Below the pieces are notes generated by a model that saw nothing but the letters and a program-made list of their open reading frames with translations, was not told the DNA's origin and did not search any database. A DNA stretch of 60,382 bases, the filler included, from Trichosphaerium sp. ATCC 40318 (taxonomy: Eukaryota; Protista; Tubulinea): assembly GCA_038496445.1 (NCBI GenBank). It is 3 parts of 3 records of this genome, joined end to end, with 100 filler letters (N's around TTAATTAATTAA, not from the genome) between each part and the next. Parts side by side here need not be neighbours in the genome. Positions count along the whole stretch, not along the records: positions 1 to 15,206 come from JALMLS010000518.1; 2 more parts are not named here. One strand, 5' to 3'. Each line of letters starts with the position of its first letter. The stretch's first letter is position 1. Both the position numbers and the translations under genes were made by a program. Shown piece by piece: positions 1 through 15,206 of this stretch.

Positions 1-1372
1 GTGCTTGAAGCAGTTCTTGCACACTACCACCATACCTATTTACTATGTAAGATTTTGCTAGGGGTAGTTGATGTAGTTTTGTTACTCTCAATGTCTCGGA
101 AAAAGACTCGTGACAGGTTGATAGACAAGTTTGTTTGTTGTTGATTTTGGCGTACATTTTTAAGAGACTACTGCCTCCATACTGACGTATGGTTGTTGCC
201 TGCACGTTTCTTAAAGAGTCAACATCCTTAACACGTATTGAAGCAGAAATAGATTCAAGCGCTTTTAATCTATTAAATCGAGAGTCCCAGTATGTGTGAT
301 TGACATGTCTAGTAATTAATTAAGGTTTAAACAAGGCACAGTGCGTCATTTGGATGAGTTTAACGACAAAGTATAGCGTAAATGTTACTTACGCAAAATC
401 ATGTGTACTCCAGTTGTGATTGGGATACAAGGTCAGCAATGTATCGATAATAGAATTATTGTATCTGTAACTATGATTTAGAAGAATGTAGTTAAGATTT
501 TTGTAACAGTACATTCGTGTTAAACGTCTGCCACCATGACGAATAGTATCTTTATGCATTATCTGATACCAATCATCTAATTCCTTAACACCCAATTTCT
601 CTGCAATACTATCAAGGAACGTCCTTTGTGTGTCGAGTTCGCTCCAAAACGCTTGTACAACATTGCTATTTATAAAAATGAACACTAACTCATTACACAG
701 CGACAACCAACCACAGGTGTGGCTTTTTTCTGCAAATTCAAAAATCATTTTGTGCGCACGTGAATTTAGCAGATGACCATTTGTGTTGTGGGAATACTGC
801 CTTCAGACATTCTTGAAGTGAGTTATTGTACCTACACCAAAGAGTGTTAACAACCTTTTGATAAATAATCTTATCATACCCGCGTAATAGACCACCTATA
901 TCAGAGTTGATGGCTTGTGTTGTGGTGACTTCGTACCAACCATCCAAATGTCGCACTTTTAGTCTTTTAGCTAAATCTTCAATACAAGCGCGATGGTTTG
1001 TAATTTTAGCCCAGTGTGAGCGAGGGGCGTGGCTATTGATAGATTTAATATGACAGGTTGTCAAAGGTAATATTATAAGTGCCTGAAACGTAGAGGATGC
1101 CATTTAAACTTTGGAAACACTGCTTTTAAGCATTTTGATATAGAATTTCCGTATCTAACTCTATGAGTACTGGCGATAATGTTTTGAGTAATCTTGTACC
1201 GGTGTAGCACTCTACGGGCATTATTTTCGAATAAATCCTTTGATGTTACACTATACCAGCCCTGAAGGTCCTTTACGCCTAAATCACGCGCCACAGAGTT
1301 TAAAGAGGTTCTTTGTTCCAAAATTAATGCCCTCGCCACCCTTTTTGGTAAATTAACGTTGTTCCTCCTCAA
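1..1372 (-). CDS. Multi-exon tandem-repeat protein (at least 4 copies of a ~65-aa W..R..L..IA..L.V..L.xWY...GG..L..Y..S...L..VFP...W unit); runs off the window start
   Basis: ORFs 389-748, 738-1103 and 1073-1372 each contain one unit. A fourth unit (YWDSRFNRLKALESI...YGGSSLLKM|YGGSVQELLQ) lies at 1-310. GT-AG introns sit at the homologous position in each unit. The true start is uncertain. Confidence 0.7.
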
Positions 1373-3127: not shown

Positions 3128-6990
<3,863 letters not shown>

Positions 6991-7126
6991 TAAAAGAAGT
7001 TAGATTGCCGTTATTTTTTGGCGTACACGTATGAGAAATGATTAAACGTAATGTTTTAACATTCAGAGCACAACAGTGACTTTTCAAAGTTTGCATACAC
7101 TTTTGTTATTTTGTAGTGCAGTTTAT

Positions 7127-7890: not shown

Positions 7891-10080
7891 ACAAAGCGAC
7901 GGAGAGCACAGTACGTGAATAAAGGTGTACGTCAAACTTACTCATTTGTAGACAAGAATCAAGCTCGGATTCAGAATTGTCAGAGCCTCGACAGAAGAAA
8001 CGAAAACTGTACGTCTTCTTCGAGATCGATTTCTTTTGCTTTTCGACTTTGGTAACAATTTGTTTCTCAAATCACTTGAAATTTCTTTGCTTACTTAACT
8101 TTTTTTTGAAAAACTTTCCAACGTTATATAGTATATTTTGTACTTGTGTTAACACGTTGGTGTAGCATCAAAAAAACTGATAGCAAAGAGGATCAGGAAT
8201 TAGGACTCAAGTTAGGGGAAGTTTATAAAGAAATCTTAGCTTCTCAGGCTGCTCAAGATTAAAAAATTGAAGCAATGACACAGCAGTTTAAAAGGAACGG
8301 AGGCAAATAAACCAAAACAGAGGAAGCGGCCAAAAAAGCAAAGGAAACCGAACTTCGGATGTCTAACGCACTTCAATCAAACCAAGAACAATTGGTGTCT
8401 CTTAAAGATCAAGTAGAAGTCCATAGTGTGATTGTAAAGAACCTGGAAGCATCATTGGATAAACTGTCGACAGAGAATGAAAGGCTTAGAAAAAGTTTAG
8501 CTAAAGCAAAACATATCATTCACCGCATGCAATTATTGACCGAGAAAGTGTCCTGCAATTACATCTCCGAGCTCGCGCTTCCATTTCAGCAATACAACAA
8601 GTACTATCGTGCGTATACTTTACTGATTCTGCATTGAGCCACCTAAGCTTTTTCTTTAGATGGTGCTTTTCCAAAGGCTTTTCGTATCATAGATCTAGAT
8701 CTGAATGAATTTTCGAACTTTAAGCTTGACAAGGAGTGTTCTAACTTCATGGACCATACTTTTTTCACAACAGAGATATCTTTTGGCAACTATCAAGTTC
8801 AGGAATTAAACTTGAACTTGAATATGATGTAATCAATTCTCAGACCAAGAACCCAACAGATGTTCCAGAACAAGATGCAAATAACAAACATAGTTACGAG
8901 ATAAGAGATACTCGCCCTGATGTCTGTTTGGTAACCAAGGGATCTGAATATTCTTGGTTTAATATTGTTGTTGTGATTGAACTTAAGCTTAAGTTATATC
9001 AAGTAGGGATAGAACAAGACAACTCTATTGGCCAGCTTCAATATCATCTGCTCTCTGTCATGGCAATGAACGTAATGCGCACCTTCGCATGGGGTATCAT
9101 AATAAACGGGGTAGACGTCATGTTTGTTAAGGCAGTGAGATCAAAGGAAAATCTAGATGATATTGTATTTCATAAGAGCAAGAGTATAAACTTGGTAAAA
9201 GGTGGATCAAGGATGATCCAACAACTTGTCCGCCAAAGTCCTGATACTCTTGGATGGTTTCCAATCAAACTCGAGATTGAAGATTTTAAAGCGCACCCAT
9301 ATAGTGCTGTTGGACGTACCAAAACAAGTACGTACATAAAGTTTCATGAAAATTGTTTTAATTTCTTGCTTAGGTGTCGTTTACTCAGTTGTTGATGAGA
9401 AAAACCACAGGATGGTTGTCGTCAAACAAAAATATGGCAACGACGCCCAAAAACGCTTAGAACGTGAAGTAAATACTAAAGCAACTAAAAGACGTGGAGG
9501 GTGTACCTCACCTGGTAAGTATATTTTTATTACCCATTTTTGTACAAGTCATTAACAGTAGTGTTACACCAGCTAAATATGTGAAAATCTTAGAAGCTGT
9601 ACATGCCAAAGGATTATGTCATGGGTACCAACACTATTCCTTATTTTAAATAATTAACTTATCTTATGTAGGAGGTTATCAATGGAACATCTTTGTGCAA
9701 GTTGTACTGAAGAGGCATACATCTTACATTGGGGAGGTGCTGTGAAACTAGGTACAAAGAAGAAGTATGAGGGCTCTCTACTTTTCGCACCAGATCATGT
9801 CATCACAGACTACAAGCACAAGAACCAGGTTGTTGAACATACAGCAGCTGATGACCTTGAAACATTAATTCGACTCTTTTACTACTGTTTTACAAAGACA
9901 GAGGTAGAAGCCAGGGATATGCACAAAAGTTGCAATTTATGTTGTGCTCAGGGCAATAGTGAACAGCAGAAGCTTCTCACAAAATATCGGCCTGACATGC
10001 CAAGCAGCTATGTGAGGGCGTTAAAATATGCTAGTGAGCTAAAATATGATGCCATAATTGAATGTTTACAGGTGGCGTAA
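7891..10080 (+). pseudogene. Crinkler-like PD-(D/E)xK nuclease plus protein-kinase gene with coiled-coil/NLS N-terminus, apparently disrupted
   Basis: RPDVC...VVVIELK...IGQL...AWGII (REase fold), followed by kinase-like segments VVVK...LEREV, ILEAVHAKGLCHG, HWGGAV, YEGSLLFAP and DDLETL. In-frame stop near 8260, and the catalytic loop is not recoverable. Confidence 0.65.
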
Positions 10081-10240
10081 TTAGAGGTGTTAACGAAACA
10101 GTTTTTGTAACAACTAACTGTTTCAGTCTGAATTTGATCACACGTTGCAGATTTTTCAATCAAGTGTTTTGGTAGAGCCGCTGTCGGGCGATAGCGCTTT
10201 GAACCAAGGATATCTCGAGAGGGCCTTCAAAACAAAAAGG

Positions 10241-10616
10241 TTAGAAATTTCAAGTTCGCTGATTTGAGAAAAACGAAAGTCAAAAAGCAGAGAAATCGCC
10301 GAAAAAGAAGACTTACAGTTTTCGTTTCTTCTGTCGAGGCTCTGACAATTCTGAATCCGAGCTTGATTGTTGTCTACAAATGAGTAAGTTTGACGTACAC
10401 CTTTATTCACGTACTGTGCTCTCCGTCGCTTTGTTCGTTTTTTTGGTGTTGGTTTTTTGAGCGCAACGAGGTAGATGTGATAGCGCTCCTTTTTGTACAC
10501 GTTACAGATTGTTGTACACAAAAGGGCTTTGATAAAATAAAAAACTTTTCAATTTGCCAAGAAAAAGTGGAGTTATCATCTGAATCAGAATGGCTGCCAC
10601 TTCTAGTTGTGAGCAA
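10241..10616 (-). repeat. Inverted partial copy of the 5' exons of the nuclease-kinase gene (10241-10434 matches 7891-~8086)
   Basis: Near-identical reverse complement, including the exon SSSDSELSEPRQKKRKL and its splice donor; truncated downstream. Confidence 0.85.
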
Positions 10617-10812
10617 ATAAGTTATGGTTCAAAAGCGGCTTTTGGCGTACAGGTGTTGTAACAGCTTTATTATTTCGTTGGCAATGATTGTTTTTGTAAC
10701 CTTCAGCTTTACAGGTTTCATAAAATCCGTCCTATCACCGAGAGTAACGTATTTATATTGCTGCTCCCAGAGGGTGATAAGCTTTGATTTCGAGCATTGC
10801 TTCAGTTGTGCT

Positions 10813-13023
10813 TAGCGATGTTCCAAACGGATAGATTGCAAAATTCGTATTTGAACCAAATTTTCTTGGTTTATTCGAAGAATTGTTTTCTGAATATTAA
10901 GTAATCTACTTTACAACTGAAAATGGCGTGCACCTATTCATGTCCAAAATTGCCCATAGAGGTATGGGAAATGTATATATTACCATTTGGGATTACCAGA
11001 CTCTCAGACGCTTTTAATCTTATGAACGTTTGTAAATCATTCCATCGATACTCCAAATCGCGTTTATTCTGGCTTGAGTTTCTCGATAAACGATATTTGA
11101 TGCTTTTGGACATTGTCAAGCTTTGTTACAAAAAAACCGCACCAGGCCTTCTAAAAGTCATCAAAAACACATATATTACGTGGCCTGAGAATATATACGC
11201 TTCCGGAGGCATCAAAGCCGTTGTTTTATCGAAAATATTTGTAGCGGAACAAATCACCGATATCGACGCTGAATTACAGTGGCATATAAGCGGTAAATGT
11301 GCTGTTTGCTCTACGACAGAAGATATGGACAGTTTTTATCACTGCGAGCAATGCGATAATGTTAGCGTCTGTATTGATTGTGGAGAGCGTACTATAACAT
11401 CAGAAGTAGATAAACCGAGTATTGATTGGAAGGCAGGACCCATTGGGGATCCTAAAAAGTCTGCTGAAGAAAAATCTTGTCACGGTGATCATTGTTTTAC
11501 GTTCATTGAAAATATCAGTTGTATGGCTTGCTATACATCTTATTGGGTTGATGGTTACATGGAATGTAAGACTTGTTCTAGAACATGTGGAACAAGCAAG
11601 TACTTGTGCCTTCTATGTCATAAGAGAGGAGTATCTTATGAACATAAGTCATACGAAGAGGATTGGGATGGATTCTGGCACAGACCAAGTCACGTGATGG
11701 AATTTACAATGCATCATAATAGAGTATGTGATGTTTGCCTAAAATCTCCTAGACGTTGGTGGCGTTGTACGGAGTGTGATGAAGAAATTTGTGTTGACTG
11801 TTTTAATGATAATAAGACGGTTGAAAAACGTGATGGAGAGGTTGTTTGTGATCATAAGTATTTCCTTTGTAAAGGCTTGATGAAGGAAGTTAAAAACTCA
11901 GAAAATCCTACACCGTTTAAAGAAAGTTTGGAATCAGCAAAGTTCCCTTTAAATATACTGTCAATGTACAGTGATGACTTTAATGGGTATGGAAGTTACT
12001 TTACGTTATTCAATAGCCATTGCCCAGGAGTTATGGAAGGATGGATAACAAGAGGTGGTATCGAGTATGGGATAAAATACCAAGGACAACCAGATTGTTG
12101 GAGATTTTGTGGTAGATTTGGAAGTAGTCAACAAGGATACCCTGATGACGATGATGGCCATATACTATACACTCGTACCGGTATTAAATATAAAGGCGGC
12201 ATATTATCACATTCATTCAAGGGTAAAGGATTGATCACGTTCGTAGATGGGTCATTCTTTGATGGTGTTATTTCGAAGACTTCTTATTTTAATTTCACGG
12301 GTGAAGGAACTTTCACTTCAAAAAGTGGGGTATCATCTCATTGTTCACTATCTACAAGTGATGCATCGACATTCACTTTTTTCCACATTGTTGTAGGATA
12401 TAAAAAGAAGCTTGCTGTTATGAGGGTAAAGTACGGGTATCCCATTGAACTAGATGTTGAGAAGGATTGGTATAAAGAGAACAAGCATTTGAAGTCTGGT
12501 AGTAGTAGTACAAGTGACAGTACTAGTAGTGATAGCGATAGCAATAGTACAATTAGCATTGAAGACATTGGGGAAATCGATGATCTCTTTGACTTGTAGT
12601 AAACGATAGAACATTAAAACAAGTTTAGAGTAAAGTAATGTATAGTAACTGTTTTTGTGTTTGCTTAAGGCCTTTAAATATGACGCACACAGTATGTTTT
12701 TTTCCAAAGACTTGTGGCTTCATGCAAAGTGGTACGTAATAAAGTAATGGTAATAAGGTAAGAATCCTCTTGATTTAAGATCTGGGGTCGTACAAAGAAG
12801 CACAAGATGAATCTCTCAAACAAGTGTTTTACTTTTTTGTAATTCGTAATCTAAGCTTATTAGTAACTCTCTGTTTTTAGAACACCAAATTGTGGTTTGC
12901 TCTGGTGTCAACATGGCTTGAAGTCGCTCTTCTCTGAAAACCGAATCGGAATATATTCGACAATTTCCAACTTTTTACGTTCTGGCGATAGATTCGGTAT
13001 TCTATTCGTTTGGAACATCGCTA
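10813..13023. mobile_element. Non-autonomous hAT-type DNA transposon carrying a cargo gene
   Basis: 23-bp TIRs TAGCGATGTTCCAAACGGATAGA (10813-10835) and TCTATTCGTTTGGAACATCGCTA (13001-13023), 1 mismatch. Perfect 8-bp TSD GTTGTGCT at 10805-10812 and 13024-13031. ATTCG-type subterminal motifs at both ends. Confidence 0.9.
10923..12599 (+). CDS. Intronless 558-aa protein: F-box, three ZZ-like zinc fingers, MORN-like repeats, Ser/Asp tail
   Basis: LPIEVWEMYIL...LMNVCKSF...LFW (F-box); three CxxC..CxxC..CxxC..H clusters; GIKYKGG..FKGKGLITFVDGSFFDG..GEGTFT (MORN-like). Confidence 0.85.
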   Translation: MACTYSCPKLPIEVWEMYILPFGITRLSDAFNLMNVCKSFHRYSKSRLFWLEFLDKRYLMLLDIVKLCYKKTAPGLLKVIKNTYITWPENIYASGGIKAVVLSKIFVAEQITDIDAELQWHISGKCAVCSTTEDMDSFYHCEQCDNVSVCIDCGERTITSEVDKPSIDWKAGPIGDPKKSAEEKSCHGDHCFTFIENISCMACYTSYWVDGYMECKTCSRTCGTSKYLCLLCHKRGVSYEHKSYEEDWDGFWHRPSHVMEFTMHHNRVCDVCLKSPRRWWRCTECDEEICVDCFNDNKTVEKRDGEVVCDHKYFLCKGLMKEVKNSENPTPFKESLESAKFPLNILSMYSDDFNGYGSYFTLFNSHCPGVMEGWITRGGIEYGIKYQGQPDCWRFCGRFGSSQQGYPDDDDGHILYTRTGIKYKGGILSHSFKGKGLITFVDGSFFDGVISKTSYFNFTGEGTFTSKSGVSSHCSLSTSDASTFTFFHIVVGYKKKLAVMRVKYGYPIELDVEKDWYKENKHLKSGSSSTSDSTSSDSDSNSTISIEDIGEIDDLFDL

Positions 13024-13346
13024 GTTGTGCTACCGTTGGGATACAGTCAGAGCTAGAACGGGTTGGAGATTCGTTGGTTTGTGGTCATTTTCAGCCTCTG
13101 TACCAGAATTCCTCACGGCTCGCTTGTTTTTATTTCCTCGAACAAACAGAAAGGCGTAACTATGAAATATTGAATCCTTTTGTTTTCTATTGTCATAGTA
13201 GCCAATAGTGCAACAACCCTTACTTTGTATTTCTAACTATGTAAAGCTGAAACAACAGGGCACGTGAGAGCAAAACCGCCTGCAAAGCTGAATACAGCAC
13301 AAGTTTTACAATTAATTGTAATAAAAGCAAATGTTTCGAAAACTAA

Positions 13347-14815
13347 TCACTTTATTTCAGATATCTTTTTGTAGGAAAGGCATCCTGTCTCATCGTATTC
13401 TTCCTTGGAGATACATATTTCTTTCCTGAACGTGGAAAGAGAACCAAGGATTGACCCACCGATCCAAGATAAGTGGTCCTCACTAGGAGTACGCACATTG
13501 ATCTTCATTGGAGTGCGAGGAGCAATATTTTGAAGGTCTTTTTCTAGTCTTTTATCGAGACCTTTGAACTTTGCAGAACCGCCTGAGAGTACAATATTAT
13601 TATACAATGGCCTCCAGTTATCTACTTTACACTTCATAAGTGCGCTATTAACTGTTTCATGTAAGCCAGTTTTGCTTGGATTCTCAACAATACTTGAAAG
13701 CAAGTTTGGTTGGAACATTGCTTCTGTGCATTCGAAACGCTCGTCGCCTATTTTGATGGTATCACCTCCAGGTAGTATGTAATGGACCTTCTCATTACTA
13801 TCAATCTCTTTTTTGAAATCGAGTTGTACATAACAGGTTCTTTCTTTGATATCGCGGACTATACGAAGCTCATACCAAGTGGAGAAAGTACCACGTTTTC
13901 GTTGATTGAGCAGATTTTTTAAGTACTCGGAAATATGTTGACCACCAATATCTGAGTGGACTACGCCTTTCTCACATATGGTCCCTTCATAAAAAGGTAC
14001 GATTCTGGTGATTTGTTCTCCGATATCAATAACAGTTCCTGAGACACAGGGTAAGAAAGGCAAAAAGTGGAATTTTTTTCTTCAACAACTACCTGTAGTA
14101 GATCCTGAGGTGATGAGTGAAAGCGCTTCTTGTTTAGCAATATGCATGGCAGGTACGTTGAATTTTTCAAACATAATTTGTGTCATCTTTTCCCTACAGA
14201 AGCAAGTGTTAATATAGAAGTAGCGCAGACATGTATAAAGAAGGCAATTGAAATGACTTTGCAGTTCACTAAAGTGCCTCTGGTTACCTACGTGTTCTCT
14301 TTTGGGTTCAAAGTATACTCTGATAATAGAATAGGTTGATTCTCTGGCTGTACTTTAAGCTCATTGTCAAAAGTATGACGCCACAAGATTTCCATTTCAT
14401 CCCAGTTAGTTATGACACCCTTTTGAACAGGGTATTTCAATGTACAAATACCACGTTTAGAGAACACTTCCTCACCAACATAGCATTCTAAAAAAAGCAT
14501 GTGATTAGAGCTCCGGTATAAACGGACTGTTGCAGGTAAAATTTATAGACTGCTTGGGATACATTTTGATAGACAGCAAAGGCTTGGTCCAGTTTATTTT
14601 CGTACCTTTAAGCTTTTTGGCTATCTTTTCTTGGCATCCGGGTTTCACGTGACCTACAACAGACGGAAAGACAACTCTCGGAGCTTCTTCTCCTGCAAAA
14701 CCAGCTTTACACACGTATGAGCCATTCGTTATAACTACTGAAGGTTCTGTAGGAGTACAAGTAAGAATGGAAAAACAAGTGCGTATTATAACGTGTAGCG
14801 CATACCTTCAGACAT
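13347..14815 (-). CDS. Divergent actin / actin-related protein (multi-exon)
   Basis: [96 protein letters not shown]. Confidence 0.9.
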
Positions 14816-15206
14816 TGTGGGCGAAGTACTTACTTTTATTTGTTTACTACTAAGCAGCCTGTGCTTAAACAAACATGCTTGGTAGAAACTTCGCAAAAAT
14901 TCTTTGAAAAATAGGTTATCTAAACGGTTTTAACGTGGTTCACATATTCCACGACATGTTCACCACGAGAGGGTACTGTCAGTGTCAACGAGTGAAGCTT
15001 GCTTAGCAGTTCGAAACCAAACCCTAAAAAAGGTTACAATTTTTTTTTGTTGAACAAGCGGCATAGCGCTAGCTCCTACTTTATTAGATTACAGTATGGG
15101 AAACACATGCTTTGGTGGTATTCATCATGTACTTTGCATACTTTAAATGGAGGATTCAAAAGCAAGACTAATACAATATGAACCACGTGAATCAATGCTA
15201 TTGGTA

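Follow-up and report, generated by a model that had tools for sequence, protein, structure and literature searches.

The window analysed here is a stretch of 60,382 nucleotides (filler included) from Trichosphaerium sp. ATCC 40318, and its first 15-kb piece holds a compact element at 10813-13023 (2211 bp) with an intron-free open reading frame (ORF) of 558 amino acids on the plus strand (10923-12599). The left terminal inverted repeat (TIR; 10813-10835, plus strand) starts with TAGCG and pairs over 23 bp with the right TIR (13001-13023, minus strand), 22/23 positions being identical, with the outer 17 bases perfect, then one mismatch and five further matches. Immediately outside both TIRs is an exact 8-bp direct repeat, GTTGTGCT, the target site duplication (TSD; left copy 10805-10812, right copy 13024-13031). 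The left subterminal stretch and 5' leader (10836-10922, plus strand) contain ATTCG at 10843 and 10873; the 3' trailer and right subterminal stretch (12600-13000, plus strand) contain AATAAA at 12738 and ATTCG/CGAAT at 12842, 12942, 12955 and 12992. The ORF has no internal stop and makes up 76% of the 2211 bp, leaving 110 bp upstream of the ATG and 424 bp downstream of the stop codon. The initial annotation had described 23-bp TIRs starting with TAG, a perfect 8-bp TSD and an uninterrupted 558-residue ORF filling about three quarters of the element, and these features and their positions were borne out.

Several other genes and repeats lie in the same piece. At 389-1372 (minus strand) is a gene built from repeated units of about 70-100 amino acids, each with a LAxxLGVKxLDxWY-like motif and with short introns between them; it matches no Pfam family. 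An intron-rich DEAD-box helicase gene, DDX42-like by eye and with an Arg/Ser-rich tail, is at 3128-7003 (plus strand), and a divergent actin-like gene is at 13347-14820 (minus strand), its last exon being about 227 codons and scoring about 175 bits against conventional actins. A second inverted repeat (7891-8110 and 10226-10434) ends 380 bp left of the element; its arms are about 210 bp, with the outer 130 bp nearly identical and the outer ends mismatched, and they enclose 2.1 kb. No TSD was found for it, and viral contigs do not contain its first 30 bases; it may be a long-TIR element of the MULE-like type or else have arisen by inverted duplication. Between the long repeats, at 8100-10082 (plus strand), is a spliced gene that begins with a coiled coil and includes a FunK1/fungal-type kinase region (Pkinase_fungal, E 0.005). 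The gene is apparently disrupted, since stops interrupt its frame near 8260 and 8308 and the frame changes near 9470; CpG in this region is 0.58, lower than elsewhere in the piece. If the long repeats are TIRs, the kinase gene would be a second gene-carrying element beside the first. Joining the sequences outside the element into an empty site (10632-10812 plus 13032-13082) leaves open frames of 122 codons (plus strand) and 78 codons (minus strand) running through the junction. Random joins do so in about 10% of cases, and the sequences flanking the site had no Pfam or PDB match; insertion into a small exon is possible, at a level not beyond chance. The DEAD-box gene, the kinase gene and the empty-site join were searched as separate pieces. 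No part of the 15-kb piece resembled human DNA.

The TIRs together with the 8-bp TSD are far beyond chance. Nowhere else in the piece is an inverted repeat of at least 6 bp flanked by an exact 8-bp repeat, and chance repeats were rejected as the source since only 3/300 simulated pieces reached even a 10-bp inverted repeat with an 8-bp TSD, the real element having 17 perfect bases. A 9-bp TSD, AGTTGTGCT, with the right end one base shorter, is also readable, since an A both precedes the left copy and ends the right TIR; the 8-bp reading is favored because it keeps the ends symmetric, whereas the 9-bp reading makes them asymmetric. An 8-bp TSD and a YARNG terminus are hallmarks of hAT elements (PMC3014272), and TAGCG fits the YARNG rule. 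Short repeats clustered near element tips are bound by hAT transposase BED domains (PMC10368747). A repeat of this sort, which the initial annotation does not mention, adds weight to the assignment: ATTCG occurs six times in the two terminal 110-bp stretches (220 bases), where composition elsewhere in the piece predicts 0.21, the highest rank among 137 five-mers (p 1e-7, or about 1e-5 once 137 tests are allowed for). In amoebae, Ac-type hAT elements are active; copies with an intact transposase, and MITEs descended from them, occur in Acanthamoeba and pandoraviruses (PMC6004678). From the end features alone (TSD, YARNG and subterminal repeats) the element would be assigned to the hAT superfamily, and youth is the best explanation of its state because the TSD is perfect and the TIRs differ by one mismatch only. 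The original description of a young, non-autonomous, hAT-type element thus finds support in these same features. One copy of the element is present within the 15-kb piece, and no empty site, further TSD or autonomous partner was seen. The TIR 23-mer is absent from metagenome contigs, which indicates only that they do not include this genome, and four matches of the TIR 17-mer in viral contigs were judged to be chance, there being no likeness beyond the 17-mer. An Rfam scan gave no match, and tblastn against phages returned weak tape-measure matches only.

Judged from its sequence, the cargo is a host-type gene that belongs to a small unnamed amoebozoan F-box-like/MORN-like family and is not a transposase. 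Along the plus strand, the ORF encodes an F-box-like motif below the Pfam cut-off (aa 8-51, 10944-11075; LP-E, IL-P, VCK, FW), a conserved helical extension that is confident in the structure model (aa 52-112, 11076-11258), three ZZ/C1-like six-cysteine clusters with His nearby, which vary across the family (aa 126-153, 200-232 and 269-293; 11298-11855), a family core motif that is 56% identical to the Arcella protein (aa 329-388, 11907-12086), a MORN-like beta-hairpin sheet (12087-12461, the fold match covering aa 344-513), and a Ser/Asp-rich tail of low pLDDT (12495-12596). With the single sequence, every Pfam match was sub-threshold, including F-box on aa 1-60 (E 0.012, 15.9 bits against a cut-off of 20.5), C1 (E 0.0014), C1_2 (E 0.0008) and ZZ (E 0.016-0.1), and MORN gave no match; the family was placed by HMMER relatives instead. 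Four relatives match F-box-like (best E 3e-5), the family profile finds MORN proteins in the PDB (E 9e-12, with the repeats degenerate), and for the modelled aa 344-513 the top fold matches are all MORN (Foldseek E 5e-5; VIA Z 8.3-8.7). The zinc-finger region has weak matches to the dystrobrevin and CBP ZZ domains and is absent from the structure model, which was built from a 15-row alignment and can be relied on only over aa 10-110 and 350-480; the fold from the single sequence was unusable (pLDDT 31). The proposal of an F-box/ZZ-finger/MORN gene therefore stands for F-box-like, zinc-finger and MORN-like parts as seen through relatives and fold, but not at the level of single-sequence Pfam matches, and the F-box-like/MORN-like identity appears established only by the former route. 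On the basis of its F-box-like motif, the protein may be an SCF substrate adaptor, in which Skp1 would be bound by the F-box and substrates by the zinc fingers together with the MORN sheet.

Searches of Pfam, NCBIfam, PDB sequences and folds matched no transposase in the ORF, in agreement with the first reading of the gene, and gave no sequence or fold match to the RNase H-like catalytic domain of DDE/D transposases (hAT, MULE and others). A divergent transposase, which the initial annotation had named as one of two cases that would overturn it, was rejected on these grounds and because the relatives are non-mobile genes. No hAT transposase remnant was seen in the trailer across six frames. 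In leave-one-out profiles the window protein scored 112 and 89 bits, comparable to other members of the family, and it is thus not visibly decayed. GC3 of the ORF is 0.33, near that of host exons (0.37 and 0.20).

An exhaustive HMMER search identified 12 relatives at 24-38% identity, although word-index protein searches with the ORF or its alignment found nothing; in exact look-ups, the ORF and the neighbouring genes were absent from the collections. Relatives with similarity at both termini come from Arcella intermedia (EP01124_P024286), Acanthamoeba castellanii (ACA1_261030) and eukaryote-like metagenome contigs, and the family layout consists of an F-box-like start, a helical extension, a variable middle (the zinc-finger region), a conserved core and a MORN-like beta-rich end. 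The Acanthamoeba and Arcella proteins share the order of parts with the window protein and are 26-30% identical to it overall and 56% in the core. Unlike the gene in the element, however, members of the family are ordinary host genes that have introns where the DNA is readable (with one exception, P0004), no TIRs, and fewer or no zinc fingers: the window protein has three, and its relatives one, two or none. ACA1_261030 has seven introns and adjoins ordinary host genes (clathrin, TFIID, kinase). No TIR or TSD was found at the 10 relative loci examined, several of these contigs being short. The exception, P0004 (L005:2221-3909), is a 562-residue, full-length, intron-free relative without TIRs and with long AT-rich non-coding DNA on either side; intron-free family members therefore exist outside transposons. 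A further contig (L009:1-8604) is gene-dense and intron-free, has FNIP, subtilase and MYND genes, and encodes an F-box and MORN protein, P0005; it is presumably giant-virus-like. A literature search found no report of this gene family or element, which is weak evidence since the coverage was limited.

That the ORF is intron-free amid intron-rich host genes, as first noted, was confirmed by the neighbouring DEAD-box gene with its many short GT-AG introns; the actin-like neighbour has one open stretch of more than 220 codons. Within the family, one intron is shared in the same phase two codons before a YxxWP motif (Acanthamoeba, L013 and L016), and another, also in the same phase, at a Gly codon after the core (Acanthamoeba, L008, L013 and L016). 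The window gene lacks both, as does P0004 (L005 and L006), again without TIRs, and L008 lacks the first. Absence of both ancestral introns fits an RNA step, and the retrocopy origin suggested in the initial annotation is plausible to that extent, but the trailer has no poly(A) scar (nowhere five consecutive A), the element shows no inner TSD (direct repeats inside it do not exceed 8 bp), and the TIR-less P0004 shares the absence of both introns. Intron loss may predate capture.

Together, these findings are best explained by a young non-autonomous hAT element (a Pack-hAT or Pack-TIR) that carries a full-length, intron-free, host-type F-box gene, a reading given a probability of roughly 0.7. 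The host would be a protist rich in introns and, to judge by the cargo's relatives and the short-intron genes, probably amoebozoan. A hAT transposase encoded elsewhere in the genome would bind the TIRs and the ATTCG repeats, cut the unit out and reinsert it with an 8-bp duplication. The gene would have entered the element by template switch or gap repair from an intron-free source, either processed or intron-poor, with a copy of the F-box adaptor gene replacing the interior of the element. The cargo is most likely a passenger, that is, an extra gene copy for the host rather than a service to the element.

The superfamily and the history of the element can each be read in another way. Assignment of the ends to a different superfamily (P, Merlin, Zisupton, or a MULE with short TIRs and a 9-bp TSD) is unlikely, although MULE, P, Merlin and Zisupton elements can also leave 8-9-bp TSDs, MULEs have TSDs of 8-11 bp and TIRs from 14 bp (PMC6446971), and the 9-bp duplication can be read here. 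The target preferences of hAT elements are nTnnnnAn (Ac/Hermes; PMC10368747) or nnnTAnnn (Buster), and the TSD, a single site with T at position 2 and no A at position 7, matches only half of the Ac/Hermes pattern. Against another superfamily are the asymmetric ends that the 9-bp reading brings, and the short TIR with short subterminal repeats, which is hAT-like. The terminus TAGCGATG also fits YARNG and resembles Ac-family ends. As to history, a sub-case of the preferred reading is possible, if tentative, in which a hAT element or MITE inserted first, making the TSD, and an inner break was then filled in place from an F-box gene or cDNA; there would then be a single loaded copy, which has not transposed since it gained its cargo. 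Single-copy Pack-TIRs in animals form mostly in place, by transposition-independent gap filling of an element already inserted (PMC8277862), and for this reason a TSD around the loaded element is no proof that the cargo has moved; one copy is in hand, and the searches of metagenome and viral contigs described above produced no other beyond chance matches. On the other hand, the tidy layout, with flanks of 110 bp and 424 bp free of transposase remnants, resembles a trimmed and repeatedly copied unit, and neither an internal TSD nor poly(A) marks a later retro-insertion. If capture took place in this manner, the claim in the initial annotation that the element spreads its cargo falls away.

Two further proposals concern the cargo itself. 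The element could keep the F-box adaptor for its own benefit, for example to direct a silencing or chromatin factor to the proteasome, and the undecayed full-length ORF that fills most of the element, as well as a zinc-finger count of three, higher than the zero to two of relatives, would agree with such a role. ZZ-like fingers can read protein N-termini such as that of histone H3. There is precedent in AACRNL, which lies within non-autonomous hAT TIRs and relieves H3K27me3 silencing (PMC12957317), in VANC (PMC5735166), and in an F-box isoform in Zisupton, as cited in PMC12062965. However, any young insertion should have an intact ORF, the family elsewhere consists of ordinary host genes without TIRs, and a MORN sheet suggests partners at membranes or the cytoskeleton rather than chromatin; an accessory gene of this kind is improbable, and so in like degree is its fullest form, a multi-copy family of minimal hAT elements in an amoeba whose sole gene, a processed and full-length F-box adaptor, is maintained by selection and serves the elements themselves. 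The anti-silencing or host-manipulating role raised in the initial annotation drew no support from the analysis. A giant-virus source for the cargo, an intron-free F-box and MORN gene taken up by a hAT common to amoeba and virus, is also doubtful. The absence of introns, the 41% identity of the N-terminal domain to P0005 on its virus-like contig, and the Pandoravirus F-box/MORN proteins among the fold and language-model neighbours are consistent with it; furthermore, hAT MITEs move between amoebae and pandoraviruses (PMC6004678), and intron-free F-box/MORN genes could thus pass likewise. P0005, though, matches in the profile at aa 8-112 only, where it scores 74 bits against 80 bits for the cellular P0002, and the N-terminal tree leaves the window protein unplaced. 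For the core and the C-terminal part, the nearest sequences are those of Arcella and of intron-bearing genes, and the viral fold matches are generic MORN at 11-20% identity. Sharing of the N-terminal 105 residues of the family by P0005 suggests an exchange of this module between amoebae and viruses. For the gene as a whole, viral origin, which the initial annotation had entertained, was not supported, as the relatives with the full architecture are amoebozoan or eukaryote-like genes, several with introns, and none were found in IMG/VR; a viral source would be less likely than an amoebozoan or other eukaryotic one.

The preferred reading, a young hAT loaded with a host-type gene, would provide a clean protist example of a cut-and-paste element that holds a complete intron-free gene, and such an element offers a route for expansion of the F-box family. 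Should the loaded element turn out to be multi-copy, expressed and under purifying selection, the retention of a ubiquitin-ligase adaptor by a transposon could be tested on it; a single, silent copy would make it an ordinary Pack-TIR. Were the element a selfish multi-copy one, it would be a direct case of capture of an F-box gene by a transposable element, as sought without success in a 2025 survey.

Plant Pack-TYPE elements typically hold gene pieces. Gene-carrying transposons have already been described in plants, animals and fungi, and Pack-hAT is a published class known from maize and rice (PMC8903248) and from a frog (PMC8277862). The rice and maize Pack-TYPE and Pack-hAT elements are, like the element in the window, non-autonomous, with TIRs, an 8-nt TSD and host coding DNA in place of transposase, but they are from plants and are defined as multi-member clusters, whereas here a full-length intron-free protist ORF is seen in one copy (PMC8903248). 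Animal Pack-TIRs (e.g., Pack-hAT-N8_XT and Ssk-FB4) likewise have TIR ends around captured host sequence and include hAT cases and one young protein-coding case (PMC8277862); they differ in being DNA-based captures that retain introns, with intron-free captures filtered out of that survey, while two ancestral introns are absent here. In AACRNL (PMC12957317) and ToxhAT (PMC6737239), as here, a whole non-transposase gene lies between hAT-type TIRs, but these are much larger multi-gene units with demonstrated function (AACRNL relieves silencing of its own locus), and the present element is 2.2 kb and known from sequence alone. ToxhAT also differs in having its own transposase and no TSD, in contrast to the perfect TSD of the window element (PMC6737239). 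A tie between F-box genes and DNA transposons is seen as well in the Zisupton F-box isoform and in fusions of F-box and transposable-element domains, as given in PMC12062965; in the fusions the F-box is joined to transposase domains, whereas here it is a separate cargo without one. The same 2025 survey reported no evidence of F-box domain capture by transposable elements, the Zisupton isoform being cited apart (PMC12062965). In summary, the kind of element is already known, and its modest twist is that a minimal element in a protist carries one full-length, intron-free F-box gene.
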